A stretch of DNA of 64,000 nt, taken from NCBI GenBank assembly GCA_021613535.1, contig CP075497.1, forward strand, positions 11,222,001-11,286,000, given 5' to 3'. The stretch comes from Adineta vaga (Eukaryota > Animalia > Rotifera). Under the pieces are notes generated by a model. That model was not told where the DNA came from. It made no database searches and saw only the letters and a program-made list of their open reading frames with translations. Positions 47,301 to 54,705 of the stretch are shown piece after piece. The first letter of the stretch is position 1, and every line of letters begins with the position of its first letter. The position numbers were made by a program, and so were the translations under genes.

Positions 47301-49591
47301 CCAATTCGTTACCTTCATTATCACTCGTTCCACCACCATCATCACAATCTACAGTCAATCATGAATCAATGATGGATGATAATGATGATGAATATTATGA
47401 AGATGATATCGAACAGATTGAATCATCAACCATTCAACAATTAAATACAATTAATAATAATAATAATACAAATTCGATTACAAATTCAACGAATTCAAAT
47501 CCAACTTTTTGGGCTAAAGGCACAGGATTCGGTACAGGTTCGACACATTCACAATGGAAACCAGAAGAAATTCTTCAAATTCAAAAACTTCATGAAGAAC
47601 ATGTGATTTATCTCTTCGATATATTTCATTCGATCTTTTCAAATAAATTATCGGAAGATCTTCTTGATGAACATTTAATCGAAATTATCAATACATCATG
47701 TTTGATTCCTGTTTTGGAATCATATTTACGTAATGATTCAATCTTAGATCTTTCTAAACAAGGTGATATTCATCGGCAATGTTTACGTTTAGTTTATTGT
47801 TTATTAAATAATCAAAAATTAAAGAATTTAATCTATCAAACAAGTAATATTGAATATCTTATTGAAAATCTTCTTCAATGTGTTCAAACATATACATCAA
47901 TGATACAAATCGATGATGATGAACAATTAAATTTATTTTCCGTAGAATTAAAACAAGTCTATGATAAAATCAAAGAAGAACAACAAATTGCGAAAGAAAC
48001 AAATAGTGAAAATCTTCATCTATCAACGAAACAATTCATTACATTGGAAGAATTTTATTGTCAAACAATGAAACTTTTACAATTTAGTACATATCCAATA
48101 ACAATTGAAAATGAATCGGGAGAAAAAGTTTTATTTAATAAAGTCATGAAATATCATTATGAAGATATTGTTCGTGATGCGTTAACAATTAATTCTATGC
48201 AACGAATTAAACGTTTAGCACAAGAACAAATAACGATTTCAACATCATTACCATTATCATTCAGTTCAACAATATTTGTTCGTTCCGATGAAAATCGTAT
48301 GGATATTATGAAAGTTTTAATAACAGGTCCAGATGGAACACCTTATTCGAATGGTTGTTTTCTATTTGATGTTTATTTTCCCAATGAATATCCCACATCA
48401 CCACCATCGATTAATTTAGAAACAACGGGAAATCATACTGTGAGATTTAATCCGAATTTATATAATGATGGAAAAGTTTGTTTGAGTATTTTGAATACTT
48501 GGCATGGAAGACCAGAAGAAAAATGGAATACAACTTCGACATTTTTACAAGTAAGACGATCGGAGAAATTCTTTTCTTCATGAAGATTAGTTTTTGTTCT
48601 TGTTTTAGATACTTGTATCGATTCAATCGTTAATTTTTGTTCCTGAACCCTATTTTAATGAACCTGGATATGAACGAACACGTGGAACAGCAACAGGAAC
48701 ATCGCAATCATTGGAATATGATGCAAATATTCGACAAGCAACTGTTCGATGGGCAATGCTTGAACAATTACGAAATCCTCCCGCTTGTTTTACCGATGTT
48801 ATTCGACGACATTTCTTTCTTAAACGAAGTAAGCTTTTGTTTGGAGAAAAATTTTGTTCAAAGAATTTTTCTTTTTAGATGAAATTATTGAACAATGTGA
48901 AATATGGATTCGAGAATTACAAGATTCTTCGTCAACGGAAAAACGTGTTAGTTCATCTATCAATCAACATTTATCTTCATTAATTCGTCATACAAATGAT
49001 CTTAAAAAAGAATTTGCACGTTTAACTACACCCGATGACTTAACAGTTCCATCGGAATTAACCAATTTTTTACTTCATACATCCACTTCTACAAATTTAA
49101 CTACAGATCAAGTCGCGCCTTCATCTACATCATCAACAACAGTTATAACAATTCCACCCATATCGGAAACTAATCAGATATCTGATTCGACAACAGATGA
49201 ACATTCAATACAAATTAAAATAGTACCTAACCTTCAATATCAATCATCGACAACGTCTACAACTGTTGCATCACCTACAATATTAATCGATACTGAAACA
49301 CAACAATCGTCGAATTCTTCAACGAATCTATTCGATCAACAACAACAACAACAACAAACTTCATCTTCATCATCAAATCCCAATACCTATGATATAACAA
49401 TCTCTCATTCAAATAGTTTACTTTCTGATTGGACGACAACTGATGCTCCACTTGTTCCTTTAACTGATGATGGATTAATCTATGATGATTTACTTGATGA
49501 TGAAGATGATATGGATGATGATTTAGATGTTGAAGATATGCTCGAATATGAAGGTGATATTCCTGAAGGTTATCCTGAAGACTTTTATTGA
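35783..49591 (+). CDS. BIRC6: BIRC6/BRUCE/Apollon giant IAP (BIR + UBC), about 4,500 aa, 7 exons
   Basis: N-terminal BIR ([16 protein letters not shown]...MAKAGFY...DRALCFAC...[21 protein letters not shown]), [13 protein letters not shown], and a C-terminal UBC with [17 protein letters not shown]. Short introns link the consecutive ORFs. Confidence 0.96.
38340..38387 (+). repeat. (CAA)n microsatellite encoding 16 Gln in BIRC6
   Basis: Direct read, with one CAG interruption. Confidence 0.95.
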
Positions 49592-49894
49592 CAATTCTTT
49601 TTCTTTTCTTCGTGAAAAAGCCGAGTGATTGATTGATATTTGTATGTTCTAATTTGTTTTCTTCTGTACGTATTCTTGATTGCTAAAAAAGCAAAACACA
49701 AAGACACTTTTCTCTTTCTCTCTTTGTTATTTCATTCGCTCTGTGTGGTTAACTCATGTTATTAGTCTTAAAGTAAACAAAATGCAAAAACATAGCACGG
49801 AAATATTTTTTATTTAATAAACGAGAAAACCATAAAGCTACTTGTTCGATTTGATTGAATTCATTTTAGATATTTGTTTTCGATATTTTATTGA

Positions 49895-50386
49895 ATGATA
49901 CGATTGAGAAAGGTAAGAAATCAAACTGATTTTATCAAAAGATCAATATGAAAGAATTTAGGTTTCCCTTGTCAACGACATCCGTAAGAATCGTACTGCA
50001 CTTTATTATTGGTCACTAGGTGTTGGTTTCTTTACAACTGCATCTTTCATTACTGTTGGTTATTTTCTTTAGTAAGTAAAAACTATTCATAAATTAGTGA
50101 ATTGATTGTATTTCTTTGTTAAGTTCCTATCGAATTAAAAAACGAACGAGAGAAAGTATTGAAAAAGGTAATACTGAAAAGATTCTTAGTCCACAAGGTT
50201 TAAATAGTCAAGGTTTGTTAATTATTTTCTTATTTGCTGATATTCAGAATGTTTTGTTAATTAGAAATACAAAAAGCGATTGTATTATTTGAAAAACAAC
50301 GTGCTCAGGATCAGATTCAAATTGATAATTTCGAACGCTATAAACAATTACGTAATAAACGTCGTGAACAAGAAGGTTTACATTAA
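49895..50386 (+). CDS. 112-aa single-TM protein, 4 exons (49895-49912, 49962-50071, 50124-50212, 50265-50386); not in the ORF track; possibly mitochondrial
   Basis: Three 49-52 nt GT-AG introns join 339 nt into one frame: basic N-terminus MIRLRKVSLVNDIRKNR, TM segment LYYWSLGVGFFTTASFITVGYFLY, charged helical tail. Confidence 0.8.
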
Positions 50387-50399
50387 ATATTAAATTACA

Positions 50400-53300
50400 A
50401 TGTTTACACATTCTACAACTAAAGTTTCAAACGAACATGTTAATCATATTGTTAAATCGATTTTAAATAAACGACAACGAAATATTCTCGAACAACAACA
50501 AACATTTATACGAAGAAATACCGATGAAAATAATAAAAGAAATAATTATCTTGTGGATAAATTTACAATGAAAAAACCAACAAAGTTTGTATTCTTATTT
50601 TCTTCTCTCGAAAGAATTTTATCTTCGATTCAATTTGGAAATAGATCATCAAAAGAAAACATCAGAAATCCAATAGCAACAACACCAAAAAAGAAAACTA
50701 GAATTGAGAATAACGATGATGATGATGATGATTTTGTTTCGACTAAAAAACCTTCAAAAACAATTGATCTACCAAAGAACGAACCTATTACAATGAAAGC
50801 CGATCCAATTGAAGAATGTCTTGAAGCGATTACTTCAGAAATTGAACAAGAAGATGCAACATGTCCTATATGTAATCAACTTTTAACGAATTTCTATACA
50901 ATTGATCAAAGACAGCAACATGTCAACCAATGTTTGGAAAAATCACAGATAAATAATGTACGTTCCTCATCATTGAATCTTAAAAGATTAGAAAGCAGAA
51001 TCAAAACTTGTGATTATTTGTTTAGATTGAAACAAAACATCAGAAAAGTTTATTATCTTATTCAAAATTTTCTTCAACTAGCCGAAAACCATCAACAAAT
51101 TTCAAATGTCAAATTTGTGGAATATCATTCAATGTTAAACGTACTTATCTATCTCATCTAAAAAAATGTTCAAATCAAAACAGTGTACAACTCAAACATA
51201 TAGTAAATTTTGCTGCGAAAACTATAACAACAACAACGACGGATGAAACAAAATCAATACCAACAGAAAAGAAAAAATCGACAATGAATATTAAGAATCG
51301 AATTATTAAAATGGAAGTACCAGTTACAGAAGATGATGAACAACAACAATTAGTAATGTTTATTTTAGAAAAACATTAGAACTAAATTAGATGAATACTC
51401 TTTTTAGGCAATCGCTTTATCTGCTTCAATTAAAACTGCATCAGAACCTCCTAATGCTTTTGATATTCTTCAAGCTGCATCGAAAAAAATGAAAACAATT
51501 GAGTAATTTATTTTCACACAATAATTGATTAGTCTTAAATCGAATTATTCATTTTAGTTTATTAACAACACCATTGTGGAATGTTTCAAATGAAGATAAA
51601 CTTAAACTTTCTTCTACTCGTCTATTGAACATCTGTGAACGTGTGATATCAATCGATTCTGAAACAAATATCTATAAATTTCCTTCCAGTTCACTTCACT
51701 TGATATCACAAATCAATTTTGGTCATGTTAATTGGTGGAATATAACAACAACAGATCCTCAAGATGATGAAGTAAAACAATCATTTCATTTCTTCTTCTT
51801 TCATTGATTTTTCATTTCCTTTTTTAGATCCCGATGACTCAATTAGCTCGTATACTTAATGATAGTGATGAATCACTGACGTAGTTTAATCCATTGATAG
51901 TCTATTTTTTCGTAAATAAATTTTTTGAAAGAGAATAAAAAACAAAAGAACTTAGGAAAAACATTTATGGAAAATATATGATTAAAATCATGTTCTCTCT
52001 TTTTTGTATTACAGATGATGGATGTTCATCGAGATAATGATGATAATGACAGTGATCGAACAGAAAGTTATACACCACCACCAATTGATATCACAAATAT
52101 TTCTTATAATAGTAGTGAAAAAGAAAATCAATATGAACATATTAGTATACTTAAAGTAGATTCAATTACAGTCTTAGATAATAGTTTCAATCAAGTAAAT
52201 ATTACTAAACCACTCGATTATGAACCAGGTTAGTCGTAATTGAACTTGAAAAGAGTTTTGTTATTCGTTTTATTTTTCTTAGTTGATAATTATTGGGATC
52301 AATGGCCGTTATTCAATGATGAAGCCAATAAAGAAGAACTTTCACAATTGTATTCAATACCTGATATAGATGTACCACCTTCTCCTCCACGACCGATTAT
52401 TTCATCACCAATTTCGCAACTATCCACAACGACTGAAAACAATATTCTTGATATTCTAACATGTCCTTCTTCTTCTTCCTACTACAGTGCAACTCAAGTA
52501 CACAAATCTCCATCGAAAAAAGCACCAGTCAAACGAAAGAAGAAAAAGAAACCTATGTCTGAATATCGACCACCATCACCATTTTCTCCGAAACCAGATT
52601 ATAAATCTATGGATATTGAACGAATAAAAAATCATGCAATGAAATATGGTCTTTCAACTAGTCTTTCTAAAGGGCGATTGATTAAAATTCTTGATGAAAT
52701 TTATAATGTAACTCATCAGTATGAAACAGATACGGATTTCGAATTTGATACGAATGATATTGATTCATCAAAAGTGGTTTCCAATAAGAAAGATTTATCT
52801 CACACGCCACCGACACCAGCAATCATGGCTGAAAAGAAAAAACCAAAAAAACGTCCAGCTGTTCATCACATGAGTTCTTCCGATGATACCAATGAACATT
52901 CTCCACCAAAAATAAAGAAAACAACACCAATTAGTACAGTAGATAACGTGAATAATAATCAGTCAGATGAAGATGACAATGATGACATTGATGCTAACCA
53001 TGAAGGTCGATTTCTTGAATTAACAGTTTATGAATTATCGTCGTCCGTTGCATCGTCCAGTTCATTATCAATTACCGATACTCCGTCGAATCGTCTTCCG
53101 ATTATCAGTCCTTTAAAACGTAAGTAATTAACCATAAAAAATCACCTTTCTTATGTCAATCAATCTTTATAGAATCACCGATAGAAACAGTTTCTCAATC
53201 AAGTACAACAAAGAAATCGAAATCAATATCTTCTACTTCCGATTCTGATGCTCCATCGTCGAAAAAAGCACCTAAACGTCCTAAGCTTCAAACTCCCACA

Positions 53301-53540
53301 CTTCCTCTCAAAGAAATCGTTCGTAACTATATTGAATCCAATCCATCTCTACACGCACGTATTCTCTGTTATGAACCTGTTGATTTCGAAGACTTTCATA
53401 AACAGATGAAAACGGATCTGAATATTAAAATTCAATCAAAAGAATTAATGCAATGTCTCGATGATCAATGTATTACATTTACATTACGTTCACGAAAAGG
53501 CGCTTTCACTAGCGTAATGAGAGCAAAACGACGCAAATGA
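50400..53540 (+). CDS. SLX4: Structure-specific endonuclease scaffold SLX4 (UBZ4, second Zn finger, MLR, SAP, SBD); no BTB evident; may be split at 51772-52014
   Basis: UBZ4 CPICNQLL...RQQHVNQCL; MLR-like EDDEQQQLAIALSASI; SAP PFSPKPDYKSM...KYGL...KILDEIYNVTHQ; SBD SLHARILCYEPVDF...LMQCLDDQCITF. Confidence 0.88.
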
Positions 53541-53623
53541 TAAATAGATATTTTTCCTCTTTGTTTCTTCTCTTTGTTAATAAATCAATCTAGTCTTATG
53601 AAATTGAGCAATTTGTCTTTCAG

Positions 53624-54705
53624 ATGTCAACAATACCATCGACAACAATATCGACGAAAAAAGAAAAAAATGAAGATCAATTTGAATTAGAACAAGAATT
53701 TGTTCTTCGAATGCCACCGGTATGATGAACTTTTCTCCTCAGTCAATTTGAATACATGTGATTTCATTTTCTTAGGGAGAATATGCGACAAGATTACATG
53801 ATTTGATCGAATCAGGTGATGAAAAAATTCGTGAACGTCTTTTCATTGATCTGAATGCGGAAACAAGACGTGGACGTGTAAAATTCGATGATACGATTTT
53901 TAAAGCGACACTCTACGATTTACCATGTGTTACAGAATCTTATAAAACATTTGATCGAAAAACGATGTATAAAATCGCAGATATTGCTCAAGTAAAGAAC
54001 GAAATCTTTCATAATTTGATCAACAAATGATTGTATATTTAGGTTCTTGTTTGTCGATTACCGGGTGATCTTAGTTCAAGTGATGACGATGATGATGAAG
54101 ATGAAACAACAAAACGAGCAAGTGCAACAACAATATCTGATGGAGGAAATGATAAAAAGAAGAAAGATAAAGATAAAGAAAAGAAATATCAATGGCCACA
54201 TGGATGTAAGATAAAATTTCAATTGATTCGATTGTTTTGCTTCATTTATGATTATTAGTGACGGCACCGTTGAAAAATGTACGAAAACGTCGTTTTCGAA
54301 AAGTTGCAAGACAAAAAACACAAGATCATGACGAAATTGAAAAGGAAGTACGACGTTTATTTCGGTAATATGATTTGCATTAAATTTCGATTTATTTTTT
54401 GTTTATGAAAGAATTTTCTATTTTAAAGAGCGGATAATGAAGCAGTTGATGTAAAATGGGAAATTATTGAAGATGATCAAGAAGTCGAAGTTCATAAACC
54501 AATAGAAAAAGATCCACTTGGTACGACATAAAAGGTCCTTTTCATCGTTTAAAACTATTTCTTTTTTTTTAAGAACATAATGATCTATTTGGCGGTGCTG
54601 TTAGTGAATCAGATGAAGAAGACGCTTCACAGAAAGGTTTGCATTCTCAATACATTCATTCATTCATCATTCAAATTATTAATTCAGGTCATACCGAACA
54701 CCATC

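Follow-up and report, generated by a model that had tools for sequence, protein, structure and literature searches.

In a 64,000-nucleotide (nt) window of the genome of the bdelloid rotifer Adineta vaga (GenBank assembly GCA_021613535.1, contig CP075497.1, positions 11,222,001 to 11,286,000 of the forward strand), a small gene encoding 112 amino acids (aa) lies directly upstream of a gene for a 396-aa zinc-finger protein. Assembled RNA contigs and comparative evidence point to leaky scanning on a dicistronic mRNA as the best explanation of this arrangement and probably the correct one. The two open reading frames (ORFs) would be cistrons of a single spliced-leader-capped mRNA that extends from position 49870 of the window to probably beyond 51884. 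Scanning 40S subunits would first meet the AUG at 49895, which lies in a weak context (U at -3, A at +4). Some would initiate there and produce a small, basic, single-pass membrane protein, while others would pass this codon, scan mature RNA that selection appears to keep AUG-free in every frame and initiate at 50400 (A at -3), thereby producing the zinc-finger protein with its two UBZ4-like fingers. An initial annotation, made from the sequence alone, had proposed a leaky-scanning dicistronic mRNA for a small membrane protein and the DNA-repair scaffold SLX4. Its single mRNA and its mode of translation are well supported by our analysis, but the identification of the second product as SLX4 is not.

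RNA contigs across the two cistrons

Transcript evidence consisted of assembled contigs, with those of runs X1, X5 and X14 behaving as RNA and those of run X11 as DNA. The coordinates first assigned to the small ORF proved exact (four exons, 339 nt, 112 aa; Table 1). The window has a GC content of 29.7% and short introns (~50 nt), and all three introns of cistron 1 appear as GT..AG joints in the RNA-like runs X1, X5 and X14 and in none of the contigs of the DNA run. At the 5' end, an X1 contig carries the loose end CTTACCAAG directly before 49868. Joined to the genomic AG, it reads CTTACCAAGAG, the 3'-terminal bases of the spliced leader known from rotifers, GGCTTATTACAACTTACCAAGAG (Table 1 of PMC3795323). 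The mRNA therefore starts at 49870, 25 nt 5' of the first ATG, and the spliced leader and 5' leader together contain zero ATGs.

A single 609-nt contig of X14 (49868-50689, its length summed from joints and pieces) comprises spliced cistron 1, its stop codon, the spacer, exon 1 of cistron 2 and 45 nt of exon 2, with the three introns of cistron 1 and the first intron of cistron 2 removed. We infer that this contig represents one mature molecule. X14 contig depths are alike over both cistrons, and X1 and X5 follow the same path, their contigs being broken only at 50219-50368. Over exactly this interval of exon 4, the DNA run yields two 150-nt contigs with 0 and 5 differences, i.e., an allelic bubble, which accounts for the contig breaks at 50219 and 50339. 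Farther downstream, all assemblies break at a GAT (Asp) microsatellite within cistron 2 (50690-50740), where an allelic 3-nt insertion occurs at 50714 and many contigs run into unrelated sequence.

Among the loose ends listed, none bears a leader at 50265 or near 50400. The spacer (50387-50399) lacks AG, so there is no acceptor between the stop codon and the ATG at 50400. The acceptor at 50264, which the initial annotation had offered as a possible trans-splicing site for the downstream mRNA, undergoes cis-splicing in each of the three RNA runs. ATG avoidance, detailed below, also affects exons 1-3, and this alternative is left without support. As a partial control, no contig bridges the junctions from 49838 to 49868 or from ~51920 to 52013.

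ATG avoidance in the first cistron and its conservation

Within the 377 nt of mature RNA between 49870 and 50399, the start codon of cistron 1 is the single ATG. The claim that the 339-nt ORF contains no other ATG in any frame was correct, and its corollary, depletion beyond chance, was borne out by shuffling (P = 0.001-0.004): mononucleotide shuffles contained a mean of 6.5 ATGs [P(0) = 0.001] and dinucleotide shuffles a mean of 4.3 [P(0) = 0.004]. Coding-like windows of 336 nt taken from long open stretches of the 64-kb window contained a mean of 7.8 ATGs and a minimum of 1, none of the 627 being ATG-free. The two starts also differ in context as first described, with a pyrimidine at -3 of the first (ttgaATGa; T at -3, A at +4) versus A at -3 of the second (acaATGt, at 50400). 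The gap between stop and start is indeed 13 nt, and the next ATG after cistron 1 is that at 50400.

A word search that took the initial, unspliced portion of cistron 2 as its query found rotifer proteins, whose contigs were then fetched. The comparison covers nine lineages (Adineta-like, three Rotaria and five others): eight genomic ones, for which the small ORF was modelled from local alignments and predicted splice sites, and an intron-free one, which came from the exon 4 profile described below. Three contigs considered as candidate transcripts (L005, L012 and L013) turned out to be unspliced genomic contigs. Throughout, database queries were single exons or natural contiguous orthologues, and the joined 112-aa model served for counting and local alignment only.

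The adjacency of the two genes and the AUG-free upstream ORF are kept in all nine lineages. Cistron 1 measures 336-339 nt (111-112 aa) in each and has zero internal ATGs in any frame; an orthologue with an internal AUG, which would have spoken against the initial proposal, was sought and found in 0 of 9. Its start carries T at -3 and A at +4, and its stop is TAA, in 9/9. The spacers measure 9-22 nt in all lineages but one, which has 72 nt; all are ATG-free, and they share no sequence. The first ATG beyond them is the conserved cistron 2 start in every lineage, with a purine at -3 in 8/9. A purine at -3 thus marks none of the nine first starts versus eight of the nine second starts (Fisher 0.0004). 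Each lineage has 2-4 ATGs in the first 180 nt of cistron 2, and the region is therefore not generally ATG-poor.

Codon choice makes this avoidance explicit. We defined as risk codons those for Asn, Asp, His or Tyr that precede a codon starting with G, where NAT makes an out-of-frame ATG. All 26 risk codons are NAC, whereas the other Asn, Asp, His and Tyr sites are 98 NAT versus 18 NAC (Fisher 5e-17), and across the locus as a whole, the NAT share reaches 0.8-0.96 in AT-rich species. For instance, N11 is AAC, which avoids an out-of-frame ATG, in 9/9 lineages, and N94 is AAT in 8/9. Synonymous resampling with each sequence's own codon usage gave probabilities of zero out-of-frame ATGs of 0.13, 0.095, 0.005, 0.0008, 0.0004 and 0.004. 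The metagenomic contig L006, with a GC content of 51% in cistron 1, is saturated at synonymous sites versus all others (pS ~0.8), yet it is ATG-free. Avoidance of AUG over the whole of cistron 1, including exon 2, implies that scanning subunits traverse it from the 5' end. As read from these alignments, the conserved weak first start and the position of the second start as the next AUG would complete the conditions for leaky scanning, with ribosomes presumably bypassing the first AUG.

No conserved poly(A) signal follows the cistron 1 stop in these lineages. As a signal for a monocistronic small mRNA, the sole recurrent AATAAA (+76 to +80) finds no support: it encodes Asn-Lys and is missing in four lineages.

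Support for the layout also comes from a profile of exon 4, which returned nine matches among 1.84 billion representatives, apparently all of them rotifer pieces or orthologues (five inspected). One of these, P0030, is a full 111-aa orthologue. Four assemblies, of which two are Logan runs and two JGI records, encode it on contigs that lack introns (L014-L017). At their 5' ends, these contigs carry 2-11 nt of the spliced leader (CTTACCAAGAG for L014), followed by the 111-aa ORF, a 72-nt ATG-free spacer and a 303-aa cistron 2 orthologue; in L014 and L015, a 339-aa Slx4-domain ORF comes next. The only ATGs in the first 480 nt of L014 are the two starts. The L014 spacer (L014:401-472) combines a long pyrimidine tract, an A-run, CAG and ACAAA before the ATG, a sequence that resembles an acceptor for latent or minor trans-splicing. 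A further contig, L018, begins within the spacer without a leader, and a distant partial copy, L019, is ATG-free in exons 3-4 and has an ATG 7 nt past the stop.

The product of cistron 1 is predicted to be basic (pI 10.2), with one hydrophobic segment at residues ~24-42 and a charged C-terminal helix in the hydropathy profile. A dN/dS of 0.2-0.45 over the whole ORF reflects purifying selection, which means that a real protein is encoded. The small gene is thus real, and it is restricted to rotifers. The profile search suggested in the initial annotation returned no family outside rotifers for the exon 4 profile or for Pfam on the exon pieces and P0030; in Pfam, neither the exon pieces nor this full-length orthologue matched a family above noise. 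A word search with P0030 found itself as the sole match, and a look-alike search of the protein atlas scored <0.9, its weak hints of small mitochondrial membrane subunits being leads only. With the DNA and three exon proteins as queries, no second copy was detected in the species' own 100.8-Mb assembly, where only the locus itself matched.

Exon 1 (ATG ATA CGA TTG AGA AAG) is nearly invariant at synonymous sites across the nine lineages, and its codons are assumed to be rare in these AT-rich genomes. Such invariance hints that not only the peptide but also the RNA near the first start is constrained. In Rotaria, intron 1 of the small gene spans 740-1574 nt (L007:2798-3537, L009:1954-3527 and L010:1903-3282), compared with 44-52 nt in the Adineta-like and metagenome lineages.

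Competing explanations and known systems

Several observations weigh against a leaky-scanned dicistronic mRNA. One contig bridges 53508-53718, the next-but-one junction, where an acceptor-ATG exists, and bridging alone is therefore no proof of a single molecule. Assembled contigs can join overlapping molecules, and they could in principle represent precursors. Since the loose ends covered are those listed, a minor spliced-leader form may occur at an internal site. With seven exon junctions a long way downstream of it, the stop of cistron 1 would ordinarily be expected to trigger nonsense-mediated decay. The first start is called weak by the general -3 purine rule and by contrast within the locus, rather than by the start consensus of this genome. 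Finally, the nine lineages are related, and the Fisher and product probabilities given above overstate their independence.

The competing explanation that fares best retains leaky scanning and casts the small ORF mainly as a regulator, a long upstream ORF with a conserved peptide by which translation of the zinc-finger protein is tuned or gated, e.g., under stress, and less as the source of a working membrane protein. We regard it as possible, albeit unlikely. It draws on the weighting of conservation towards the C-terminus, on the invariant stop and on the lack of a Pfam family or of any homologue outside rotifer-like sequences in the exon 4 profile search. However, conservation extends to the basic stretch at the N-terminus and to the transmembrane segment, length is fixed at 111-112 aa, and the dN/dS values over the whole ORF are those of a functional protein. 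Regulatory and membrane-protein roles are not mutually exclusive.

Two separate mature mRNAs are a very unlikely explanation. Cistron 2 would acquire its 5' end by internal trans-splicing (e.g., at 50264) or from an internal start, cistron 1 mRNA would be polyadenylated inside cistron 2, and the bridging contigs would be precursors. This genome does resolve neighbouring genes by trans-splicing, as indicated by the leader tail at 49868 and the contigs that start at the 52013 acceptor-ATG; contigs can bridge genes (53508-53718); AATAAA motifs occur at 50466 and 50532; and the L014 spacer offers a pyrimidine tract, with a CAG located 5 nt upstream of the ATG. Nevertheless, the leader tail was recovered at 49868 and at neither 50265 nor near 50400 among the loose ends listed, acceptor 50264 is cis-spliced in the three RNA runs, and the A. 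vaga-like spacer lacks AG. Trans-splicing at 50264 would require ATG avoidance in exon 4 only, but exons 1-3 avoid ATG too, and neither the strict AAC at N11 (9/9) nor the absence of Met anywhere inside cistron 1 is needed by this explanation. The AATAAA motifs are not conserved, L018 begins within the spacer without a leader, and X14 contig depths do not differ between the cistrons.

Reinitiation after an ORF of 112 codons is generally inefficient, which counts against coupled termination-reinitiation. This explanation is even less likely: cistron 2 would be translated mainly after cistron 1 with the aid of its C-terminal peptide or an RNA element, in keeping with the short spacer (9-22 nt in eight lineages), with the peptide being most conserved over its final 40 residues, next to the invariant TAA, and with the peptide-dependent coupled reinitiation reported for cellular mRNAs (PMC3923131). 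However, neither the lack of ATGs in cistron 1 nor the weakness of its start, both strictly kept at the codon level, is required for reinitiation, the spacers share no sequence or motif and one reaches 72 nt, and conservation upstream of the stop follows amino acids rather than an RNA motif.

Leaky scanning on one mRNA is judged here by the features applied to the bicistronic genes of green algae and to Drosophila sloth1-sloth2, whose ORFs are separated by 5 nt and for which reporter data support leaky scanning (PMC9681215). Like sloth1-sloth2, the rotifer locus is an animal nuclear gene in which an upstream small single-pass membrane peptide has a non-optimal start context, the downstream start lies in a better one and the layout is conserved across distant species. 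Unlike that pair, the rotifer locus encodes two products with no relation to each other, a membrane protein of 112 aa and a zinc-finger protein of 396 aa. Its mRNA bears a spliced-leader cap, and the unit sits inside an operon-like block with acceptor-ATGs at the other junctions.

In green-algal bicistrons, an added out-of-frame ATG lowers ORF 2 output (PMC11892635 / PMC11291117; PMC7896298). They share with the rotifer locus a weak Kozak-like context of ORF 1, the underrepresentation of start codons before ORF 2, deep conservation and short inter-ORF regions (14 nt in one algal case). The algae belong to a different kingdom, lack trans-splicing and offer a genome-wide class, whereas the rotifer evidence comes from one locus, in which codon-level avoidance (26/26) provides a per-locus comparative test in place of a statistical trend.

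Genes that lie on one strand with little or no DNA between them, in an animal capable of trans-splicing, also recall the spliced-leader operons of Caenorhabditis elegans and Ciona (PMC1488885), as do the neighbouring junctions of the block, with acceptor-ATG starts at 52015 and 53624; the operon feature is seen at 49868 and likely at 52013. The pair studied here differs in having no acceptor between stop and start (A. vaga-like spacer), no leader there among the loose ends listed and an upstream cistron kept ATG-free, which a resolved operon does not need. As in influenza B M1/BM2 (PMC3035654), the second ORF begins within a few nt of the first stop. However, the viral stop and start overlap downstream of a conserved RNA motif, in contrast to the unrelated rotifer spacers of 9-72 nt.

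Unresolved leaky-scanning dicistrons are already known in flies, green algae and viruses, and the mechanism itself is not new. In the literature searched, we found no report of bdelloid dicistronic mRNAs or of a bicistronic SLX4-type gene. The locus provides an unusually clean comparative proof of anti-AUG selection (nine lineages, 26/26 risk codons). Here, a trans-splicing animal would leave one junction of an operon-like block unresolved, and the choice between the two strategies becomes testable, as does dose control of a part of a DNA-repair scaffold in animals known for extreme DNA repair.

The downstream gene, the apparently split SLX4 and the neighbouring block

What the initial annotation took for a whole SLX4 downstream of the spacer is a 396-aa two-finger protein, and the Slx4 domain resides in a separate gene with its start at 52015 (Table 1). 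The Slx4 C-terminal domain (PF09494) is found in the last exon of this 472-aa gene (E = 9.7e-15) and is absent from the 396-aa product; X1 and X14 RNA contigs begin at 52013. 'SLX4' is therefore two genes here, and this two-ORF arrangement recurs in Rotaria annotations and in the intron-free contig L014. The gene models are corrected accordingly, with the small gene added and 'SLX4' divided in two.

Cistron 2 is at most the detached ubiquitin-binding half of SLX4. The UniRef name of its Rotaria orthologue is UBZ4-type domain protein, and Pfam zf_UBZ reaches no better than E = 0.43. Homology to the SLX4 N-terminus was not shown in Pfam or PDB, which returned generic zinc fingers only; when PDB was queried with the zinc-finger protein, by phmmer as well as by profile, the hits were generic C2H2 fingers and included no SLX4 chain. 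Its AlphaFold model, built on a four-sequence alignment, is poor (pLDDT 38). Conservation of the N-terminus (MFTHSTTKVS...) begins right at the ATG in the nine lineages. A start at 50568, named in the initial annotation as evidence against its own proposal, was rejected: the 56 upstream codons (50400-50568) are conserved, and Met 50568 is not, being missing in L014. Judged from bin depths, RNA contig cover ends near 51920, and the AATAAA pair at 51915 and 51934 likely marks the 3' end of the dicistronic mRNA.

Table 1. Features of the A. vaga locus (window positions) and orthologous contigs
Feature	Position	Strand	Evidence or remark
AG acceptor for spliced-leader trans-splicing	49868..49869	+	Mature mRNA body from 49870; X1 loose end
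5' leader, 25 nt, without ATG	49870..49894	+	In-frame TGA abuts start codon
Cistron 1 exon 1 (MIRLRK)	49895..49912	+	Joint 49912/49962 in X1, X5, X14
Cistron 1 exon 2, single transmembrane segment	49962..50071	+	RNA joints; hydropathy
Cistron 1 exon 3	50124..50212	+	Joints 50071/50124, 50212/50265
Cistron 1 exon 4, conserved basic C-terminal helix	50265..50386	+	TAA stop 50384-50386
Spacer, 13 nt	50387..50399	+	Neither ATG nor AG
Cistron 2, 396 aa, two CCHC (UBZ4-like) fingers	50400..51884	+	TAG stop 51882
Cistron 2 exons	50400-50584, 50645-50957, 51026-51352, 51408-51502, 51558-51771, 51828-51884	+	RNA joints, five introns
Two AATAAA signals (51915, 51934)	51915..51939	+	After cistron 2 stop
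Separate Slx4-domain gene, 472 aa, SAP-like region	52013..53540	+	AG 52013-4 flush with ATG 52015; stop 53538
L007, L008			Rotaria magnacalcarata; genomic
L009			Rotaria sp. Silwood2; genomic
L010			Rotaria sp. Silwood1; genomic
L006, L011			Two contigs of one ENA metagenome assembly; genomic; locus GC 51%, 36%
L005, L012, L013			Three further contigs; genomic

Annotated Rotaria loci show the same gene order: a BIRC6-like gene, the 112-aa gene, the UBZ gene, the Slx4-domain gene and TAF7. A wider reading, which we consider speculative and quite unlikely, is that bdelloids have split SLX4 into two cistrons within a conserved block that uses two polycistron strategies side by side, with the peptide ORF acting as a gate. 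The block may consist of the BIRC6-like gene, the small membrane protein, the UBZ half, the Slx4-domain half and TAF7; most of its junctions may be resolved by the spliced leader, with the first pair staying on one mRNA, and the gate may set the supply of the ubiquitin-binding half or shift it under stress such as desiccation.

In A. vaga, TAF7 follows next after the Slx4-domain gene, at the acceptor-ATG 53624. By way of an AATAAA at 53579, the 53508-53718 contig connects the 3' end of the Slx4-domain gene with TAF7, whose ATG at 53624 is flush with the acceptor, which shows that a probably trans-spliced junction can be bridged by a contig. On the other side, the BIRC6-like gene has its stop at 49591, an AATAAA at 49816 and the end of its RNA contig at 49838. 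Just 31 nt separate this end from the acceptor at which the small gene receives its spliced leader, a spacing like that in operons, and no contig crosses the gap.

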